A stretch of 63,829 nt of DNA, the filler included, from Platydemus manokwari (lineage: Eukaryota), in NCBI GenBank assembly GCA_037951405.1. It is 6 parts of 6 records of this genome, joined end to end, with 100 filler letters (N's around TTAATTAATTAA, not from the genome) between each part and the next. Parts side by side here need not be neighbours in the genome. Positions count along the whole stretch, not along the records: positions 11,492 to 23,155 come from JBBMOY010537774.1; 5 more parts are not named here. One strand, given 5' to 3'. This document shows, piece by piece, positions 11,492-23,155 of the stretch (the first letter of the stretch is position 1; each line of letters begins with the position of its first letter). The notes under the pieces were generated by a model. That model searched no databases and was not told the DNA's origin. It worked only from the letters and a program-made list of their open reading frames with translations. Position numbers and translations under genes: made by a program.

Positions 11492-12388
11492 TGTTCAGCG
11501 TTATAACAATTTGTGTTAATAAAATACCTGCATAAAAACATGAATAACTTTTGACTCAACCTGGTATAGTTAATCGATATATTATTTAGGTGCAAAAATA
11601 ATGATAATGATTATTGTTCAAATTGCCTTCCACCAAAACTGTTTTTTACAAAGCATATATCAGTGAACTAAAACAGCACAATACACACACACGCGCACAC
11701 ACACATTTCATTCAATTGGTATAAAAATTATTTGTCCTATCTATTATTCTTTATTCTTTTGATTTGTCTCGATAGTTTCAAATCCAACTCCAATATCACA
11801 TTTCAATATAATCCAAACTGATAAATCTTCCAATAGAACCGAACGAAAAATATCTAATAAAAATCTCATTTGATAACCACCATGCTGATGACAATTGAAT
11901 ATGTACAATTTTCAACTCAATTTTCAAACACAAATCTTCTTTTCAAATGATTTGAAAGCCAACGAGATGCCATTGGTAAAAATACGAAATCTAAGAGTCC
12001 AATTCAGCAACAACCACCATATCAAGTCTTATAAGACCACCACTAACACTGGTATTTCGATGAAATAAATTTCTGATGTATAAATATACCCTTCTGAATA
12101 TATTTTTATCTGATTTGACGACAAAGAACTTGTCTATATCACAATATGATCTCCATCCACCAATTTATGGTACACATGTCAATGTCACGACTAAACTTGA
12201 AAATCCTTAAATATTGAAATGTAGAGATGATAAATTAATGTCTGTGAATTAGAATCTATCAAAAATAATCCTTTTCCTGACAACCAAATACCTTAATGGT
12301 TTAATAATTGTGTAGAACCAATCAGATTACATTTTAACGATTACGTCATACACAAGATCACAGGTCATCATCGATCTATTAATCTTAC

Positions 12389-12734
12389 CCCATGGAATGC
12401 TTTAACAATGCTAGATTAGCCGAAACATCATTGTCCATGTTGTCCTCGTTTCTTGCTATCTCTATTTTGTATACGAATTGCAAACACATTCCATTACTTT
12501 CCCCATTATTAGTATTCAACCAAGAACTCCATAATCGAGCAGAATGTTTTTTAATGTTAGGTATTTTCAGCCCGACAGGTCTCATACATGCAGCATCACC
12601 GATTTTAGGTCCATAATTCATTGATTCCCAAACAGCCGTTTGATCTCGTGGATCAGTATTCCATTGACAGAATCTATCTCCATAATTGAATTGACAGTCG
12701 ATCACAGATCGAGTAACATGATCATTTTTTTCTA
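12389..12734 (-). CDS. Variable exon V13 (class B MAM-like part-domain, VEKNDH...LALLKHSMG)
   Basis: Acceptor ttttatAG, donor GG|GTAAGA, 346 nt (1 mod 3), open frame. Confidence 0.88.
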
Positions 12735-15700
12735 CTATAAAAGAAGTTATTCTTATAAACTGTGAGTATTGTGTTAAATAGAACACGGCAACGTCACGGA
12801 ACTATCATCTTTTGAATTCAATTTCATTTTTATTTAAATTCTATATTTGATAAACAAAATCTAATGAATCAGATTGTAAATCATAATTGATAATATTGAA
12901 AGAAAATATAATTTCATAATCATGACGTCATCGTATATTGTTACAATTCGAAAAATTATCTTTTATTACGTCATATAATATTGCCACAGAATTTTTGACA
13001 TAATTCTTCCTTAATCACTTATCAAGATCAATATTAATGATATAATTTATTATCAGGTTCTATTATAATCATTTATTCTTCATCAACTATTGTTGTTTCC
13101 ATACACCTCCGATGAAAACATTGCCCCATCATGGTATAACTTGAATTTTTAAAACTCTAACTTGGAGACGTTATTTTCCATGATATAAAACTATAATTAT
13201 AAATAATAATTTCACTATCTTCATTCATCAAACAGACCCTAATCTTACCCCATTGTATGTTTCAATAATGCTAAATTAGCCAAAACATCATTGTTCCCAT
13301 TATCTTCATTTTTCTCCATTTCTATTTTGTACACGAATTGCAAACACAAACCATTATTGTTTAAATTTTTAGTGTACAACCAAGAACTCCACAACCTGGC
13401 TGAATGCTTTTTAATATTGGGAAAATTTGATGCCACCGGTCTCATACATGCAGCATCACCGATAATCGATCCATAATTCATTGATTCCCAAACAGCTGTC
13501 TGATCTCTTGGATCATCTTTCCAACGACAAAATTGATCTCCATAATTGAATTGACAGTCTAATATAAATTTGGCATCTTGCCCTCGTTGTACCGCTAAAA
13601 GAATTTATTTTGTTTATGAATTTCACAACTATTCAGTTAAAGAGAACATGGCATCGAAAAGGACAACTTGATTTGTTTTTAATTCGAATTTTGGTTTTAT
13701 GTGAAATAAATCATTGATATTGCATCATCGGCATTAATTCATACGTTCAATAAATCGCAGAATAATGCATGTTGTTAAGAATTAATAATAAAAAACTTAA
13801 TAAACATATTTTCTCTCGATATGTCACATCAAATCCTGTGATATTTGAAAGAAAGATTTTAAATTTCTTCTGACTATTTTCTAAAACAAATTCAGAAGCA
13901 AATTTCAGCAATAATTCTTGATCGATATCTTCGATAGTTAGGTCGAAATCAAAAATACCTTAATATAGCTCAAATAATTTCTAGAATCTGTCAACAAGAA
14001 TCAAACAAGCCCATTTCGTATGAAATAGATGAACGTTGTGATGTTTTGAATATCTACCGAATTACAGAGGATAATCGAGAATATTCGATATACATCAATC
14101 AACACTCGAATCGTAGATGTTATTAACAAAGGTATCGACTTAATCATTTCTCTGAGAATATGTCAAATCCAATGGAAATTCTTAAAACTACAACTATTGC
14201 GGATCTTTTTCTTAGATTGATTATAATTAGTCTTGAACCTTATTTTATTTATGATCAAAAATAGCTTGATCAATAAACCTTACCCCATTGTATGTTTCAT
14301 CAATGCTAAATTAGCCAAAACATAATTGTTCTCATTATCTTCATTTTTCTCCATTTCTATTTTGTACACGAATTGCAAACACAATCCCGTATTATTCATA
14401 TTTTTAGTGTACAACCAAGAACTCCACAATCTAGCTGAATGCTTTCTAATATTGGGAAAACTTGATGACACCGGTCTCATACATGCAGCATCACCGATAA
14501 TCGGTCCATAATTCATTGATTCCCAAACAGCTGTCTGATCTCTTGGATCATCATTCCATTTACAAAATTGATCTCCATAATTGAATTGACAGTTCAATAC
14601 AGAATGAGCTTTTTGCCTGTTTTGTATCGCTAAAAGGATTTATTTATATTAAATTACTGGCAATTCCATGGACAGAGAACATGACATCGTGTTGGAACAA
14701 ATATCGCTATACTTAAATGATTTTTTTAATATTCAGTATATCGTGCACCATAAAAATCAAACTATAGTCTGTCATCCTTTTTAAAGACTGAAAGTACTTC
14801 AAACTTGCTTGCCCTTCATTTCCTCACCATACTCACTGTCAAATTGTCAGTAAATAAATAAATCTACAATTCCCATTATCATATTTCTGATAAATTCACA
14901 TTTTTCTCTATCCATATGTTTTGACCAACTATCTTCATAAATAATATTAGAACATAAACTTATCCACTCACCCATCGGAATGTTTCAAAAGCGACAGTAC
15001 TGCTTGGTTTTTATTTTCCTGTCTATCATCACCACCATTATTGTAATCAATATCGATTCTGTATGACAATTTCAAACAAATGTCTTTCGATTTTTCGTTT
15101 TCCAAATTCAACCAAGAACTCCACAAACGGGCAGAATGTTTGTTTACAATCGATATTTTAGACATTATCGGTCTCATACAAGCAGCATCGCCAATAATCG
15201 GTCCGAAATTCCTCGATTCCCAAACGGCAGTTTTATCTCTGGGATCATCATTCCAACGGCAAAAATTGTCCTCATTATCAAATTTACAATTAAGTTTCCT
15301 CTCAATTTTCCCAGCTGCAATTAAAGAATGAGGCTACAACATTTTCCAATAAAAAGTATGCACTGAACAAGATCGATTGCAAAGCAACTTGAATATTGAG
15401 TCAATGAAATGACTTTTACAATATTTTTATTCACAAAAATTTGATCTCCAACTCACCCATCCGAATGTTTGAGAAGAGACAAAGTTACATTTTTCAGAAA
15501 TCCAAAATCGTTCTCTATATAATAACTAAATCGTAAGCATTTTCCAATATCCGTTTCTGCAGTCAACCATTGACTCCATAGTCGACCACTGTACTTCGTT
15601 TGTCTTCGATAACTGATAGGCTTCATACACGCTGATTCACCAATAATTCCGCCGTAGTTTTTTGATTCCCATAATTTCGTTCTATCTCGTGGATCGAGAT

Positions 15701-18700
15701 ACCAATTACAAAACGATTTGGGTTTGAACTCACAATTTAAAACACTTTGGAAATTCTCATTTGTATTGGTGTACTCTACAACCAATCAAATTTGATTTGT
15801 AATTTATTGGTTATTTATTTACTGCAGAAATCAAAGCTCGTTTTCATTTGTTGTTTTGGTTTTTTAAAAAAATATGAGTTTTATTATTTAATTTAATTAT
15901 TCTTACCCCATTTCTCGCCTCATTAAAGTAAGTTTACTCAGATTTGATGCTGGCATGTTATCTATTTTATAACTGAAAGACAGGCATCCGAGAGAAATTT
16001 TTTTTGAAATTACAGGACCCCACAACCGTGCTGTCAAACTCTTCGTAGTTAGAGGATCAAATACCAGACCATCATTTGTTTCTTCGCTTGCTTCCATGCA
16101 CATTGCCTTATTTCTTACGGAACCGGGAATATTAAAAACTTTCCAGTTAATCATCCAATTATTATTGTCATTGCTCCAATAACAGAGATTATTTCTTTCA
16201 AAGTCACATGAAATCTTAGAATTGAATTTAGAGAACTGATTGCTCCCTAAATTACATTACTCAATGACCATTATTTTTTATAAAACATCGTTGATATGGC
16301 TAGTTACTTGGCAACAAATGTTTGTTAACAAGAATTTATTTTTTAATACAAATTTAAATCACCTTAATAACCATTCTTATTCAATTGAACATTTAATAAA
16401 ATCTTCTTTTATTTTTATTTGTGTAAATAAATTGACACAAAAAATAATATTTGTGTTATAAAAACTAAATTTCTATTGGTTGGAAAATTAGACCAATAGA
16501 AACACACCTACCCCATTTCTCTTCTCATCAATGTCAGTTTATTATCATTGCTATTAAACAATTTGTATTTAAAAGTAACACAACGCAATTCTTGATCGGC
16601 TGTCATCGATGGGCTCCAAAGTCGTATTGTCAATATTTCGTTTTTCAATCGAGCAGCTTGACTCATTTTCGGGGAACTTAAACACGTCGCTCGATTTATT
16701 CCGTATTTATTGTCAATTCTATGAATTTTCCAATTCGTCATCCAATTGTTGGCATCATTCATCCAATTACATAAATTATTAGACTCAAAATTACAATCCA
16801 AATCACTGGAAGCTGAAATTAGAAAATTCCTTATTTTAAAAAGGAGCCTAACATTGAGAACAGAGCTCTATTGAATGTATAAAGTCGGTTAAAGACATTA
16901 CCATTTGTTAAAGTTCTAACCCACAAAATTTTCAATGAATCTCAAAAACAACTGGTTATAAAATGTTCATGTTTCTCTTATTACTAACCCCATTTCTCTT
17001 CTCATCAAAGTTAATTTCATTGGTAGATCTCCATCGATTCTGTACTGAAATGAGAAACATCCCAGTACAACTTTCTTCAACACTTCCGGTCCATACAATC
17101 TGGCGGTCAACGAGTCATCACTAATATCTTCAGGAAATTTCAGACATGCTCCACCATTTTCTTGGTTATCATTTGTAAATCCAATCGAATTAAGTGATGT
17201 TTGTTTCCAATTCAATTTCCAATTATTCGGATCATTGTTCCATTTACAAAAACCATTATTGAAAGAACAATCCAAATCCGATACCGCTAAAATCATAGAT
17301 TATCTTAATAAATAGAATCTCAATCGTCATTAAAATACTGAAGAACAAAGCTCGATCACGGTTACGGTTGTCCGTTAGACCAGTTTAATTTATTAAACAC
17401 GCTTTCACACGAAATATCGATATTCCTCAAAGAGCCTTTATTAGCTATTTTATTTAAACAGCCCATACTTGACAAGGCTGGTTTGTTCGGTATTTCGATG
17501 AGCTTGTTGTAATAATTTCATCGCTTTGGAGAGAGCAGCTTGCAACAATTATATGGGAAAGATTTCCGAAATTACATTTCATTTGATAAGCACAGCAAAA
17601 CAAACTCATATATAAATTGTTTCAATTGTTTCTCCAGCGTTGGAGACAATAAATAATTTTCAATATTTTAATGTAATTTACCAACAATTTTCATTTACTA
17701 ACCCCATTTCACGTCTCATCAATGTGAGACGTGTAAAATTATCCTTTTCCATTCTATATTGGAACATTATACAACCCAATTTGACATTTTTCAATATTTC
17801 CGGCCCCCATAATCGAGCAGTTAATAGTTGATAATTAATATTTTCCGTTGATTTCAAACATGCTCCTCCGTTTTCCTGATTGTCATGGTTCATAAATCCA
17901 ATCGAATCAAGAGACGTTTGTTTCCAATTCAATTTCCAATTGTTCTGATCGTTACTCCAATTACAAAACCCGTTCTCGAAAGAACAATCTATGTCCGAGT
18001 TCGCTAAAACGTGCCAAAATGTCACAGTAATAATTTAACTTAAAATTGTCTCAAATGTGCTGAGAACAAGCTCATACTGATTAGATTTCCCCAATAAAAT
18101 TTGTCAATTAAACATGGTTTGAGTATTTCGATTTTACTAACCCCATTTCTCGTCTCATCATCGTCAACTTCATATTTTCATCATTTTCCATTTTGTAAGC
18201 GAAAGAAACACAACCCAATTTGACTCCACTATAGATTACCGGACCCCAGAGTCGACCGGTCAATGCTTTTTCATTGGTCAATTTGTCCATGTTGACATTT
18301 CCAGTTAACTTCAAGCAAGCTTCTCGACGTATCAGGACCCAATTCAACAACCAATTATTGAAATCATTTGCCCATCTACAGAAACCATTATCGAAGTTAC
18401 AATCCAATTCCGTCGTCACTGAAGACAGAAAGACCCAAGATATAAAAGAATTTTTATAAATCGATCATGATCTGAGAACAAAACTAATTGTGGATCACAT
18501 TTGTTTGTCATTTTTATTAACATAATCATCATCTTCTTTTCGATTAATGAATCTTTCTAATAGGGTAACATGGCCTAATAATCCATATTCCAAGAAAAAC
18601 TATTCAAAAAAGATCTATATTCTTCAGTGCATTCTGATTGAAAACAAAATGCGTAAATCGATATCGATGAACAATTTGTTATGAGATTCAACAAAAATTT

Positions 18701-21614
18701 GTATGGCAAAATAATTAACATTTTAATGAAATTAAAACTCCAGAAAATTCTCAGAAGAATTCCTAATAAATAACCAGAGATATCAAAGCAAATTATGTCA
18801 AAATTTTCCTTCTATTATAATACTGCGAAAAAACTGTTTGAAAATTTGATGATAAAATAATCGATTTTAGTATTTCTATTTCACTAACCCCATTTCTCGT
18901 CTCATCATCGTGAGCTTCATATCTTCGACATTTACCATTTTATACACAAATGACACACAACCCAATTTGATTCCACTAAAAATTACCGGACCCCAAAGTC
19001 GAGCTGTTAAAGCTTTTTCATTGGTCAATTTAAACATATTGGGATTGCCCCATAATTTCAAACAAGCTTCTCGATTCACTCGTACCCAATTCAACATCCA
19101 ATTATTGGGATCATTTGACCATCTACAGAAATCATTATCGAAGTTACAATCCAATTCCGATAGCACTGAAGGTAAAAAAAAAAGACCAAAGGTATAAAAT
19201 AGAATTCATTAATCGATCATGATCTGAGAACAAAACTACTTATTAATTTGTCAGTATCTTCAATTTCGTATTTCAATTCCGTTCTTGTTAACTGGAATTA
19301 AGAGATTTTATAATTGATAAGAATCGGAGAACAATGGAAAACGTCACAATTCCTCAATATTTTATACACTGTCAAAGATGTACACCAAGAAACAATACTG
19401 ATCGGAAGAAAGTAAATTTCAATGCTAATATAAAAGCCACTGAGAAATTTGCTTAAAGATTCCAATGATAGATCAAAGTAAATCTTAATTCCATTTTTAT
19501 GCAAATTTAATAACAGATCATAATAATCCATAATCATATTCAATTACATTTCTTCATTTCAAATTGACCAATCGTATTTGCCATAAATAATTGATCGATT
19601 CAAACAATGATAATTTACTGAATCATAGATTTCAATCAATATTGCTATATCATTCTAATTATAACAATCACCACCAATTTCATTCTTAATTAGTCGACTA
19701 AGGCACGTTACAAAATAATAAAACATTTGCTTATCGACTAACCCAATCTCTCGACGCATCAATGTCAGTTTATGATCATCGCTATTGAACAATCGATAAT
19801 TAAACGAAATACAGCTCAAATTGGACTTTTTCGACATCACTTGACTCCAAAGTCTAGCAATCAACTTTTGATCCGGTTCTTCATTGTCCGATCCATCGGT
19901 TCTCATGCACACGGCCTTATGATCGATTTGCGGTTGATCTAAAAATCCCAACGTTTCCAAAGCCACGATTTCCCAATTCAATTTCCAATTATTTGGATCG
20001 TTGGCATATTTGCAAAGCCCATTTTCAAAATTGCAATCCAAATGTGAGGAGGCTGAAAATTTTTAATTTGAATGATTTTTGTGTGTGTCTCTGTCAGTGT
20101 TATAAAAGGAAAATAATTCATCAGCTGAAAAATTATGAATTTTCTGAGAACAAGACTGAATGGAAGGTCTTGTTTTGAAATTTATCCAGGAAAAACAGCA
20201 AAAATCTTGGACGAATTGTAAAGAATTGTTTCGTCATGTGTTCGAAGAAAGTGCTCGGTTCGTGTGAAGAGATGAAGAAATACGATTGAGAAATCCAATG
20301 ATCTTTCAGCATAATAATAATCACATTTATTTTAATGACGAATAAGAAATCTTTTATTTTTTTTTAATAATAAATCGGTTCAGTGAGAGATACACGAATT
20401 CTGCAATTCCTAGCAGACGATCGTTTCCAAGGATTCTAATTATCATATATCGTTTGCTTTTCACCTGAATTAAAAAAAACCAAAATGACATGAAAATGAA
20501 CATCAAATCGATATCAATAAAGGCGGATCCATGTTTTCCTTCTAGACAGTGTAATCATAGATAAATGGATATAACAACATAATAAATCAATTCCTGGATA
20601 AAATATTGCCAAGCAACTCTTCTAATAATGCCTTCAAGGACGTACAAATTGAACACAAAATATAAACAGATGCCATTATATTTACACAAATTTCGATAGA
20701 AACACCATTCTTATCCTTACAACAAGGGTCAAATAGAAACACCATTACCAAAAATAGACAGCCAATCAGAGACAATTACATCGATGACAACAGTGCATTA
20801 CGCCGCCACATGCCAATTGATTTAAACAAATCGAAAAAATTAATTCAATGCTATGAATTCCATTGATTATCGATGAAATCGATATTTTCCATGTATAAAA
20901 AATCAATAAATATTTCACTAACCTCATTTCGCGTCGCAGCAAAGTGATTTTGGTGTTTCCAGATTTTATGTAATTAAAACTGATACATTTAAGTGAGGTC
21001 TTTTGATTAGACTTCCTAACGACAGGCGACAACAGTCGAACAGCATTCAAAGTTTCACTGCCACCAAAATTTTCATTTTCAACATTATCAAGACTTATGC
21101 AAATTCCATTGGTTTTAAATTCGGTGGATTTTTCACGATCCAGATAATTGAGATTGGTCACTTTCCAATTCGTAATCCAATTGTTCCCATCGTTAATCCA
21201 TTGACAGAGATTGTATTCGAACTGACAGTCGATATTCCAGGAATTATATTTTCCTATTTCATGTCTATATTACAGCAAATCTATTCGATTATGTTCAAGT
21301 TATTAAAAGTTCTTTATAGTGGCACATGCTATTCTATTACGTAATAATATCATATTTTTCCAAATACGCATAATGAGTCATCTACCAAGCACTTCTACAG
21401 TTTCCCTTAAACAAATTTAATCTAGAATTTTATTATTTTAAAATAGTTATTTTTTTCCCTGTATTTCTAGAGTAACCAAACGTAAAATTTAGTAATAGAT
21501 TTTATAGTTCCAAGCAACGAGCCTTGTTCTCAGTGCATTTACAAAAAATAAAGAATAATAATTACCTGCCGCGTAACCCATAATACACAAAAACAAAATC
21601 GCTTTCATAGTCAT
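12389..21614 (-). CDS. MAM-like domain gene, 5' part: signal-peptide exon plus 13 mutually exclusive variable exons (constant 3' exons not resolved)
   Basis: Leader exon has a phase-1 donor. Thirteen paralogous exons have AG/GT boundaries, all phase 1 to 2, with the motif C-x-F-x(3-5)-C-x-W...RL(W)xx...C-x-x-F-x-Y typical of the N-terminal part of MAM domains. Docking/selector complementarity is present. Confidence 0.85.
12780..12805 (-). promoter_or_regulatory. Selector sequence for V13
   Basis: + strand AGAACACGGCAACGTCACGGAACTAT versus docking sense AGAACAAGGC-TCGTTGCTTGGAACTAT, about 46 nt upstream of the acceptor. Confidence 0.72.
13249..13594 (-). CDS. Variable exon V12 (class B, AVQRGQD...LALLKHTMG)
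   Basis: Acceptor tcttttAG, donor GG|GTAAGA, 346 nt, open frame. Confidence 0.88.
13642..13656 (-). promoter_or_regulatory. Selector sequence for V12
   Basis: + strand GAGAACATGGCATCG versus docking GAGAACAAGGC-TCG. Confidence 0.7.
14284..14629 (-). CDS. Variable exon V11 (class B, AIQNRQK...LALMKHTMG)
   Basis: Acceptor ccttttAG, donor GG|GTAAGG, 346 nt, open frame. Confidence 0.88.
14668..14698 (-). promoter_or_regulatory. Selector sequence for V11
   Basis: + strand ATGGACAGAGAACATGACATCGTGTTGGAAC versus docking ATGCACTGAGAACAAGGC-TCGTTGCTTGGAAC. Confidence 0.75.
14972..15314 (-). CDS. Variable exon V10 (class B, AGKIERKLNCKF...LSLLKHSDG)
   Basis: Acceptor aattgcAG, donor GG|GTGAGT, 343 nt, open frame. 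Confidence 0.88.
15358..15380 (-). promoter_or_regulatory. Selector sequence for V10
   Basis: + strand ATGCACTGAACAAGATCGATTGC versus docking ATGCACTGAGAACAAGGCTCGTTGC. Confidence 0.75.
15457..15775 (-). CDS. Variable exon V9 (class B, EYTNTNE...LSLLKHSDG)
   Basis: Acceptor ggttgtAG, donor GG|GTGAGT, 319 nt, open frame. Confidence 0.86.
15821..15842 (-). promoter_or_regulatory. Selector sequence for V9
   Basis: + strand ACTGCAGAAATCAAAGCTCGTT versus docking ACTG-AGAA--CAAGGCTCGTT. Confidence 0.68.
15907..16246 (-). CDS. Variable exon V8 (class A, GSNQFSKFNSKISCDFE...LTLMRREMG)
   Basis: Phase-1 acceptor taatttAG, donor GG|GTAAGA, 340 nt, open frame. Confidence 0.84.
16298..16315 (-). promoter_or_regulatory. 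Selector sequence for V8 (pairs with the distal half of the docking site)
   Basis: + strand GGCTAGTTACTTGGCAAC versus docking GGCTCGTTGCTTGG-AAC, about 52 nt upstream of the acceptor. Confidence 0.62.
16512..16812 (-). CDS. Variable exon V7 (class A, ASSDLDCNFE...LTLMRREMG)
   Basis: Acceptor aatttcAG, donor GG|GTAGGT, 301 nt, open frame. Confidence 0.88.
16852..16868 (-). promoter_or_regulatory. Selector sequence for V7
   Basis: + strand CATTGAGAACAGAGCTC versus docking CACTGAGAACAAGGCTC. Confidence 0.75.
16989..17286 (-). CDS. Variable exon V6 (class A, AVSDLDCSF...LTLMRREMG)
   Basis: Acceptor gattttAG, donor GG|GTTAGT, 298 nt, open frame. Confidence 0.88.
17337..17354 (-). promoter_or_regulatory. 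Selector sequence for V6
   Basis: + strand ACTGAAGAACAAAGCTCG versus docking ACTG-AGAACAAGGCTCG. Confidence 0.78.
17703..18003 (-). CDS. Variable exon V5 (class A, ANSDIDCSF...LTLMRREMG)
   Basis: Acceptor cgttttAG, donor GG|GTTAGT, 301 nt, open frame. Confidence 0.88.
18053..18073 (-). promoter_or_regulatory. Selector sequence for V5
   Basis: + strand AAATGTGCTGAGAACAAGCTC versus docking AAATGCACTGAGAACAAGGCTC. Confidence 0.82.
18142..18418 (-). CDS. Variable exon V4 (class A, VTTELDCNF...LTMMRREMG)
   Basis: Acceptor gtcttcAG, donor GG|GTTAGT, 277 nt, open frame. Confidence 0.88.
18472..18485 (-). promoter_or_regulatory. Selector sequence for V4
   Basis: + strand CTGAGAACAAAACT versus docking CTGAGAACAAGGCT: 14 bp including 2 G-U pairs. 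Confidence 0.8.
18889..19165 (-). CDS. Variable exon V3 (class A, VLSELDCNF...LTMMRREMG)
   Basis: Acceptor accttcAG, donor GG|GTTAGT, 277 nt, open frame. Confidence 0.88.
19224..19237 (-). promoter_or_regulatory. Selector sequence for V3
   Basis: + strand CTGAGAACAAAACT versus docking CTGAGAACAAGGCT: 14 bp including 2 G-U pairs. Confidence 0.8.
19743..20052 (-). CDS. Variable exon V2 (class A, ASSHLDCNFE...LTLMRREIG)
   Basis: Acceptor attttcAG, donor GG|GTTAGT, 310 nt, open frame. Confidence 0.88.
20144..20157 (-). promoter_or_regulatory. Selector sequence for V2
   Basis: + strand CTGAGAACAAGACT versus docking CTGAGAACAAGGCT: 14 bp including 1 G-U pair, about 92 nt upstream of the acceptor. 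Confidence 0.8.
20923..21253 (-). CDS. Variable exon V1 (class A, divergent, GKYNSWNIDCQFE...ITLLRREMR)
   Basis: Phase-1 acceptor gaaatAG (weak pyrimidine tract), donor AG|GTTAGT, 331 nt, open frame. Confidence 0.8.
21501..21540 (-). promoter_or_regulatory. Intronic docking site (transcript sense AAAUGCACUGAGAACAAGGCUCGUUGCUUGGAACUAUAAA)
   Basis: Single GC-richer island about 25 nt downstream of the leader-exon donor, reverse-complementary to the motif upstream of V2-V13. Confidence 0.85.
21566..21614 (-). CDS. Leader exon encoding a signal peptide MTMKAILFLCIMGYAA
   Basis: ATG, basic residue, hydrophobic core and small residues at the end. Donor CAG|GTAAT is phase 1, matching all 13 variable-exon acceptors. 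Confidence 0.85.
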
Positions 21615-23155
21615 CTAAATAAAGAAAAACTTGTAAATTCAGAATTTCTTAAATATATTTAATAAAAATAAAAAAGTTCAATACAATTCCATAAATTTGG
21701 TTTTGACGCTTAAAAAATTATTCTCCAAACTTATTCATTAAATTAATTATAAAATTAATCATATTTATTAGATAAATATATTAAAAAATCCAAATGAGAA
21801 GGTTGACAGGTATTGAAACATTATTTAAAAATTTTTAAATTATTTTTACGATTTATTTTTCCAATTAAATGGTAAGATTTTAAAACTTACCATAAACAAT
21901 GAATAGTATTTCAAATAACACAGAATGAGTAATAAAAGTTAAATTTTCCACAAATAAGATTGAAAAATTAATATATATAAACAAATCAATTTGAAACAAA
22001 TTTTTTATTAGGTTTAAATCTGATGTACAGATTTTTCATCACAGTAATCTTTTTTTTGCTTATTTTATCGTTTAAAAACTATAATTTAATTTTATACATC
22101 AAGTTCGATCGTAAGTTGCATTTACCAAAATAATTCACATTTTTTAAATTCAAATTCTTATGACATTCATTCATCTTTTCTTTTAACCAAATAATTATCA
22201 GATAAAATTTTTTATGGAAATTTATAAGCAAAAATACGGGTGTTTAATTCTCAATAGTTAAAATTTTCATATTTAATCCCTTCATTTAATAATTTAAGCA
22301 ATTTTATAAATGAATCCCGTTGCTTTTGAGAATATTTTAATTAAAAATTTTATTCCAGCAAATTGTGCTGCATCGTCATTTTACTTGGAGCAATTTTCTA
22401 CCTGGAGTCAATAGATTTTGACGTATATGAGTTATGCTAAAGTAAAAAATTATTCAAAATATTTCCATAAAAATTTGCTGTTGAAGTTATTTAAATATAT
22501 AACTAATTTTATTTTCATACTAATTTCACTTAGCCATTTATTTTATTATTTTTGATAAAAACAAGAATTTTTTTATATTTCATCATTAACCAAAAACAAA
22601 TACCAATCAATTTCTTCAGTAGAATACGCGATTATTAATTTTGCTTAAACGATTTAAATGATAAAAGTGGCTTACTTTAAGAAGAAAAATAATAATTTTT
22701 ATGGTTATCTTAATTTTTTGTTATATACTTAAAATATTATATATTGAGAATTTTATCGAGAAAATTATAGAGATTTAAGTTTAATAAATTAGTAGTGATA
22801 TAAACCAATATTTGACACTACACTCTTGATTTATTTTTATATTTAATTATCATTAACTTTCTTTATAATATTCACTAGATCACTTTGTTCGTTTCTAGAT
22901 TCGCTCATTTGTTCATATTATAAAAAATAATTACAATTAAATATTAAAATAATTTGATAATAAAATGCCAGATACTAGTTTATACCACTGCTACGATCAT
23001 AAAATAAAAATTTATACTATAACATGAAATTCTAAAAAAATTATAATAAGAAATTTATAGAGAAAAATTCATAAAATTTCATAAAAAAAATTTATAATCA
23101 TAAAATAAAAATATCACGTAATTTGAACAACTATATTAAAAATATAAAAATAGGT

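Follow-up and report, generated by a model that had tools for sequence, protein, structure and literature searches.

The window analyzed in this work is a stretch of 63,829 nucleotides in which six parts of the Platydemus manokwari genome (assembly GCA_037951405.1) are joined end to end. Its positions 11492-23155, taken from record JBBMOY010537774.1, contain the 5' part of a gene on the minus strand, in which a leader exon is followed by 13 paralogous exons (V1 to V13), each encoding the first part of a MAM domain. We consider it likely that each transcript of this gene receives one V exon, most likely chosen by competing long-range RNA pairing between a docking element in the leader intron and selector elements in front of the V exons. 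This reading is drawn from the sequence of the locus and of its relatives.

Docking element and selectors

According to the initial annotation of the locus, a docking element lies about 25 nt inside the intron after the leader exon, and imperfect reverse-complement copies of it precede 12 of the 13 V exons. Both observations were reproduced. The predicted docking site (21501-21540; minus strand, as for all features of the locus) is 40 nt long and runs along the transcript from 21540 to 21501, beginning 25 nt into the intron that opens with the leader donor GT at 21565-21564. Complementary elements were found at all 12 of the listed selector positions, that is, before V2 to V13. With the predicted energies of their duplexes given in brackets, the selectors are those of V2 (20133-20165, core 20144-20158; -27.3 kcal/mol), V3 (19213-19259; -25.4 kcal/mol), V4 (18461-18494; -29.9 kcal/mol), V5 (18052-18100; -32.2 kcal/mol), V6 (17337-17382; -29.0 kcal/mol), V7 (16846-16886; -28.9 kcal/mol), V8 (16277-16315; -27.0 kcal/mol), V9 (15796-15859, core about 15821-15840; -24.7 kcal/mol), V10 (15358-15389; -31.3 kcal/mol), V11 (14660-14710; -30.8 kcal/mol), V12 (13642-13668; -22.0 kcal/mol, the weakest of the 12), and V13 (12752-12810; -33.3 kcal/mol). 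No selector was found for V1, whose best duplex with the docking element (-12 to -16 kcal/mol) is at the background level.

The selectors share the core TGTTCT, located 50-67 nt upstream of the acceptors (100 nt in the case of V2), and their 3' ends lie 17-80 nt upstream of the acceptors, near the expected position of the branch point. On the docking side, the core GAGAACAAGGCU (21531-21520) is paired in 7 to 12 of the 12 predicted selector duplexes, at every position but one in at least 10 of them. Since the selectors share these docking bases, their predicted pairings are mutually exclusive. The proposal that all selectors overlap on the docking core thus stands, with a small correction for V8, whose selector lacks TGTTCT, reaches just the GGCU end of the shared core and pairs solely with the docking 3' part (GGCUCGUUGCUUGGAAC). 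The sub-blocks used by the selectors differ more generally. Those of V8, V11, and V13 match the docking 3' part, into which the matches of V11 and V13 run 15-20 nt past the core, giving V13 a long complementarity, and those of V10 and V5 match the 5' part, with V10 pairing AAUGCACU in addition.

Beyond about 10 nt on each side of the core, the surroundings of the selectors are unrelated, as had been noted for the flanking introns, except among the recent copies V3/V4 and V11/V12/V13. These two groups are recent tandem copies in which the intron flanks around the selectors are still alike (18461-18494 with 19213-19259, and within 12752-14710). The flanks that they share show that the unit of duplication includes the selector, as the duplication model proposes.

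Statistics of the complementarity

The initial annotation had suggested comparing RNAduplex energies with those of shuffled or AT-matched introns, and a comparison with shuffles and with other windows of the locus came out in favor of the docking element. RNAduplex permits generous internal loops, and the argument rests on the comparison with controls and not on absolute energies. Against the 120 nt upstream of V2 to V13, the docking element reached -22.0 to -31.3 kcal/mol for each exon, with a sum of -324. Among 399 other 40-nt windows of the same transcript the mean sum was -167 (SD 27) and the best -238, and among 300 dinucleotide shuffles the mean was -184 and the best -227, so that none of the 399 and none of the 300 reached the docking sum (z of -5.9 and -10, respectively).

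A 10-kb RNAduplex scan pointed to the same sites: 11 of the 12 best non-overlapping partner sites of the docking element are the selectors of V2-V11 and V13, and the selector of V12 ranks 16th. On the transcribed strand TGTTCT occurs in 13 copies, nine of them 50-100 nt upstream of an acceptor. Its reverse complement occurs there three times, and the lone intronic copy is the one in the docking element. When the core was excluded, the 5' flanks of the selectors still paired with the 3' flank of the docking element better than random intron segments did (p = 7e-4). Local folding of the docking region is not significant (z of -0.14), and no hairpin that would lock it is predicted. Rfam gave no match for the locus, and a generic inverted-repeat search returned just AT-rich pairs.

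Exon organization and encoded domain

The coding part of the leader exon (21566-21614, 49 nt) begins with ATG, holds 16 codons and one further base (MTMKAILFLCIMGYAA, then G) and encodes a signal peptide. Because of this extra base the leader ends in phase 1. The region upstream of the leader is AT-rich. Downstream of it, the 13 V exons are spread across 8.9 kb, and their borders were set by acceptors and donors compatible with an open frame: V1 (20923-21253, 331 nt, with a weak polypyrimidine tract), V2 (19743-20052, 310 nt), V3 (18889-19165, 277 nt), V4 (18142-18418, 277 nt), V5 (17703-18003, 301 nt), V6 (16989-17286, 298 nt), V7 (16512-16812, 301 nt), V8 (15907-16246, 340 nt), V9 (15457-15775, 319 nt), V10 (14972-15314, 343 nt), V11 (14284-14629, 346 nt), V12 (13249-13594, 346 nt), and V13 (12389-12734, 346 nt). 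The acceptors are canonical, pyrimidine-rich and end in AG in all 13 cases, and each makes use of the single base left over by the leader. The donors, equally conserved in 13 of 13, have a G before the splice point and GT(A/T/G)AG after it and leave over two bases of a codon.

Every V exon therefore enters in phase 1, fitting the leader, and exits in phase 2, and its length is 1 mod 3, so that joining one V exon to another shifts the frame and two V exons are incompatible within one open reading frame (ORF). The V exons have no ATG or signal peptide of their own and thus depend on the leader.

The products of the V exons align to positions 1 to 84-95 of the 158-position MAM profile PF00629 of Pfam. 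V5 (40.3 bits, profile positions 1-95) and V1 (31.1 bits) score above the Pfam cut-off of 26.4, and V9 (21.2 bits) and V11 (19.9 bits) lie under it. Ten alignment columns, four cysteines among them, are invariant across the 13 exons. MAM is the sole significant Pfam match of the exon products: BphC_D1 appeared at chance level (E-value of 0.21, below its cut-off), and neither immunoglobulin nor fibronectin III domains were among the significant matches. A gene of the Dscam/immunoglobulin superfamily was accordingly rejected, as the exon products match only MAM significantly. The gene would encode a secreted or surface MAM-domain protein. Since a V exon covers about 60% of one MAM domain, it cannot be a free-standing repeat. 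How the domain may be completed is illustrated by a public model of Echinococcus granulosus, in which the last V exon and the constant exons span MAM positions 1-124 without a break.

Two other ways of using the V exons were considered, namely that all of them are constitutive and that each has a separate promoter. Both were rejected on the same three grounds: the frame, the half-domain content and the missing ATG and signal peptide. As judged from its frames, the locus is a tandem array of homologous exons with room for one V exon per mRNA, and a sensible protein would result from this reading alone.

By sequence, the V exons form two classes, V1-V8 (containing ND.NNW and ending in LTLMRREMG) and V9-V13 (containing DDPRD..AVWES and ending in LLKHS.G). 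The intron after V13 begins within the piece and is cut by its edge (11492-12388); no constant exon is recognizable in these last about 900 nt, which carry a short (TG)n microsatellite at about 11680-11705 on the minus strand. The constant exons would lie past this edge.

Relatives and conservation of the selectors

A profile built from the 13 V exons was searched against 1.8 billion proteins and retrieved two types of relatives, annotated fusion proteins and ORFs at about 65% protein identity. No named species came close to the sequence of the window in this search. The annotated homologues consist of several half-domains fused head-to-tail, and the named ones are all from parasitic flatworms: the trematodes Schistosoma, Heterobilharzia, Paragonimus, Opisthorchis, and Calicophoron; the cestodes Echinococcus, Hydatigera, Hymenolepis, Spirometra, Dibothriocephalus, and Mesocestoides; and the monogeneans Cichlidogyrus and Protopolystoma. 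Judged by the underlying exon arrays, which account for the fused V sequences, the public models in the parasitic-flatworm genomes examined are annotation errors. Fused models include P0006, P0007, P0009, P0010, P0024, P0030, P0035, P0155, and P0164, from Schistosoma, Paragonimus, Echinococcus, Spirometra, Cichlidogyrus, and others. Homologous leader peptides of like kind and phase are present in models of Schistosoma, Calicophoron, and Heterobilharzia. Both V classes recur in trematodes, cestodes, and monogeneans, which makes the mixed array old; from this distribution it seems to predate the split of the parasitic flatworm classes.

The relatives at about 65% identity come from six contigs (L001, L003, L004, L005, L010, and L011) of three other samples (SRR33002330, SRR21676451, and ERZ27256860), which together provided 18 true V exons with upstream sequence. 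The contigs are short, and none extends to a leader. For all 18 V exons, a top-ranked partner of the docking element of the window starts, as a duplex window, 72-98 nt before the acceptor. The orthologous introns of V5 and V6 are alignable at the selector only: the V5 selector is the sole conserved block, and that of V6 contains a 13-nt block invariant across three species. When pooled, the selectors of the relatives fit the reverse complement of the docking element along most of it (about 35 nt). This match over most of the docking length indicates, indirectly, that the docking sequence would be conserved in the relatives.

In L003, a decayed V exon (180-300; remnant ...REMGLV, with stops) precedes the first intact one, so the arrays of the relatives also hold dead copies. 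A protein search with V1 gave no match, and a scan of JGI metagenome contigs gave no relative, the clade apparently being missing from these data.

Proposed mechanism

We infer that the duplexes would arise in vivo and promote use of the acceptor next to them, giving one V exon per mRNA. The docking element would pair with a single selector about 20-80 nt upstream of a V 3' splice site, and this pairing would loop out the intervening 1.4 to 8.8 kb and set the leader donor at most about 100 nt from the chosen acceptor. The selectors all depend on one set of docking bases and would therefore compete for the docking core, so that one V exon would be presented at a time. V1 has no selector and is separated by only 312 nt from the leader, and any use of it would proceed without pairing. 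Inclusion of two V exons would shift the frame, and such transcripts would probably be removed by nonsense-mediated decay.

A second system by which the later V exons are bypassed at the V donors may lie beyond the piece. No recurrent element was found in the 120 nt after the V donors, and the intron after V13 is cut by the piece edge, so docking downstream of the array is possible. No RNA run was found to contain the locus. The only sequencing run that does, not recorded as RNA, showed no credible splice junction in its fragmentary contigs and had zero depth over about half of the stretch. A lone 3.8-kb skip in a single contig of that run is unsupported, having TC..CA ends and a side of 21 nt.

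Alternative explanations

Several points weigh against selection by docking/selector pairing. The mutually exclusive use of the V exons and the pairing itself are inferred rather than observed directly, and conservation in the relatives can be read from the selector side alone. Of the extended complementarity that had been proposed, the docking 3' side is statistically supported, and the 5' side is significant for V10 only. The arrays of Heterobilharzia, Echinococcus, Hymenolepis, and Protopolystoma yielded no elements of this kind. In addition, the selector core UUGUUCUCAG has the look of a 3' splice site, with CAG after a pyrimidine tract, and might be bound by a protein. The upstream element might then be a decoy 3' splice site, or an intronic splicing signal that binds a protein, and have been copied with its exon and retained on that account, its complementarity to the leader intron being incidental or serving another purpose. 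The fixed distance of the element from the acceptor would suit such a site, as would TCGTTCT of Hymenolepis, which is just the pyrimidine tract of the acceptor. However, the V8 selector, without the core, still matches another part of the docking element, and the selectors of V11, V13 and several relatives extend 15-20 nt past the core in register with one docking element. The scarcity of the reverse-complement hexamer on the transcribed strand, with its sole intronic copy of the three placed 25 nt after the leader donor, also speaks against a protein site, which we regard as unlikely. The AG of the selector as a real or alternative acceptor was rejected, since in each of the seven cases tested its use introduces stops or shifts the frame.

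It is similarly improbable, in our view, that the duplexes form without selecting exons, whether by a general shortening of the leader intron or by masking of the branch point, which would repress the paired exon. The selectors do end 17-80 nt before the acceptor, where a branch point is expected, but repression of one exon at a time cannot give one of 13, and the layout fits the activating exon 6 model in the literature. Tandem duplication, for its part, carries the flanking intron along, and the flanks of V3/V4 and V11-V13 are still shared, as they would be if the elements were decaying non-functional remnants of duplication accompanied by one chance inverted copy. This explanation is disfavored, and we give it very little weight: the selectors are the sole conserved blocks in orthologous introns of genes whose proteins are about 35% diverged, and they are retained at all 18 V exons of the relatives. 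Choice of one V exon by competing docking/selector pairing thus remains our preferred reading.

Other flatworm arrays

In Heterobilharzia, no window of the leader intron stood out and no intronic k-mer recurred. TCGTTCT of Hymenolepis, tried as a selector-like element, was rejected, being the acceptor's own pyrimidine tract. The array of Cichlidogyrus casuarinus (contig L006) has 22 V exons, and the motif CGGCTTGGCTCG occurs in 11 sense copies in its V introns (L006 7900-18100); on both strands 13 copies were counted versus 1.7 expected. The copies are mostly located 10-25 nt after the V donors, and a single copy in reverse complement, longer by one A, follows the last V donor at a distance of about 20 nt (L006 21636-21652). 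On these motif counts the array may be of the downstream-docking type. As the summed duplex energy of the candidate docking element does not stand out from the GC-rich background (z of -1.1), we see the case as no more than a lead.

At least four V introns of Cichlidogyrus also carry a palindromic element of about 100 nt that resembles a miniature transposon (arms ...CCAGTCCAAGTATCCTGGTCTCGG...; L006 near 11650, 13150, 14650, and 16800). The constant region after the V array (L006 22500-24700) consists of repeated exon pairs, with GC...D..TG..G.FW followed by ..LW.S....W..V.L....SDFK. At least five pairs are consecutive, as tandem modules or a second cluster of alternatives might be, and their counterparts in Echinococcus (P0008 residues 660-719) carry the MAM profile on to position 124.

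In our estimate the chances are even that parasitic flatworms possess an ancient, mis-annotated and diversified surface or secreted MAM protein, that in at least one lineage a docking/selector switch of separate origin from that of arthropod Dscam1 picks its variable half-domain, and that both polarities may exist within the gene family, upstream docking here and downstream docking in Cichlidogyrus. For parasitology, the array points to a family across parasitic flatworms in which the first part of the MAM domain is swapped between alternatives. Present genome annotations misrender it, as they merge exons that are alternatives into a single protein. A role in host interaction or recognition would be speculation, drawn from the analogy to surface proteins that are likewise diversified.

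Comparison with known systems

The MAM domain (PF00629) takes its name from meprin, A5/neuropilin, and RPTP mu. Like other MAM proteins, the V exons match the first 95 profile positions, including the conserved cysteines. Unlike in those, the domain is split here, and its first part comes from a cassette of alternatives. The named members of the present array family are all from Neodermata.

In the exon 6 cluster of Dscam1, a docking site follows the upstream constitutive exon, a selector precedes each variable exon, and the competing pairings overlap (Graveley 2005, as summarized in PMC6071210). The likeness to this layout that the initial annotation had seen agrees with that description. Both systems have one docking site in the intron that follows the upstream constitutive exon, and in both the selectors lie before the variable exons, here before 12 of 13, and compete for the same docking bases. 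In Dscam1, a variable exon 6 encodes the N-terminal part of one extracellular domain, and the V exons are alike in this respect. The two differ in that the Dscam1 cluster has 48 exons, encodes immunoglobulin domains and belongs to arthropods, whereas the present one has 13 exons, encodes MAM and has flatworm relatives. Here, unlike in Dscam1 exon 6, no coding region intervenes between the signal peptide and the cluster, and the exon length of 1 mod 3 would add a frame check on double inclusion.

Exons 4 and 9 of Dscam1, 14-3-3 zeta, Mhc, and MRP1 have the docking site downstream of the cluster and the selectors after the exons (PMC6071210; PMC4691838). They share with the present array a single docking site and many competing selectors, and differ in that docking is upstream in the window. 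In mammalian two-exon structures such as ATE1, intronic elements compete for one partner (PMC7797038); there two exons are involved, here an array of 13. A search of the literature by subject brought up no publication that describes a MAM exon array of flatworms or the docking site of such an array, a search for the sample accessions was likewise without result, and the many-selector arrays that were found are from insect and other arthropod genes only, the mammalian examples being two-exon cases.

That the mechanism arose independently in an unrelated gene family, as the initial annotation had suggested, is supported by the MAM-coding V exons and by the named homologues. With a gene unrelated to Dscam and named homologues all from parasitic flatworms, independent origin is the simplest reading, and the docking/selector class probably gains one more system here. 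If so, the choice of one exon among many by docking and selector elements evolves repeatedly after tandem exon duplication, as the model of PMC6071210 predicts, and the locus would offer a small, 13-exon system in which that duplication model can be tested.

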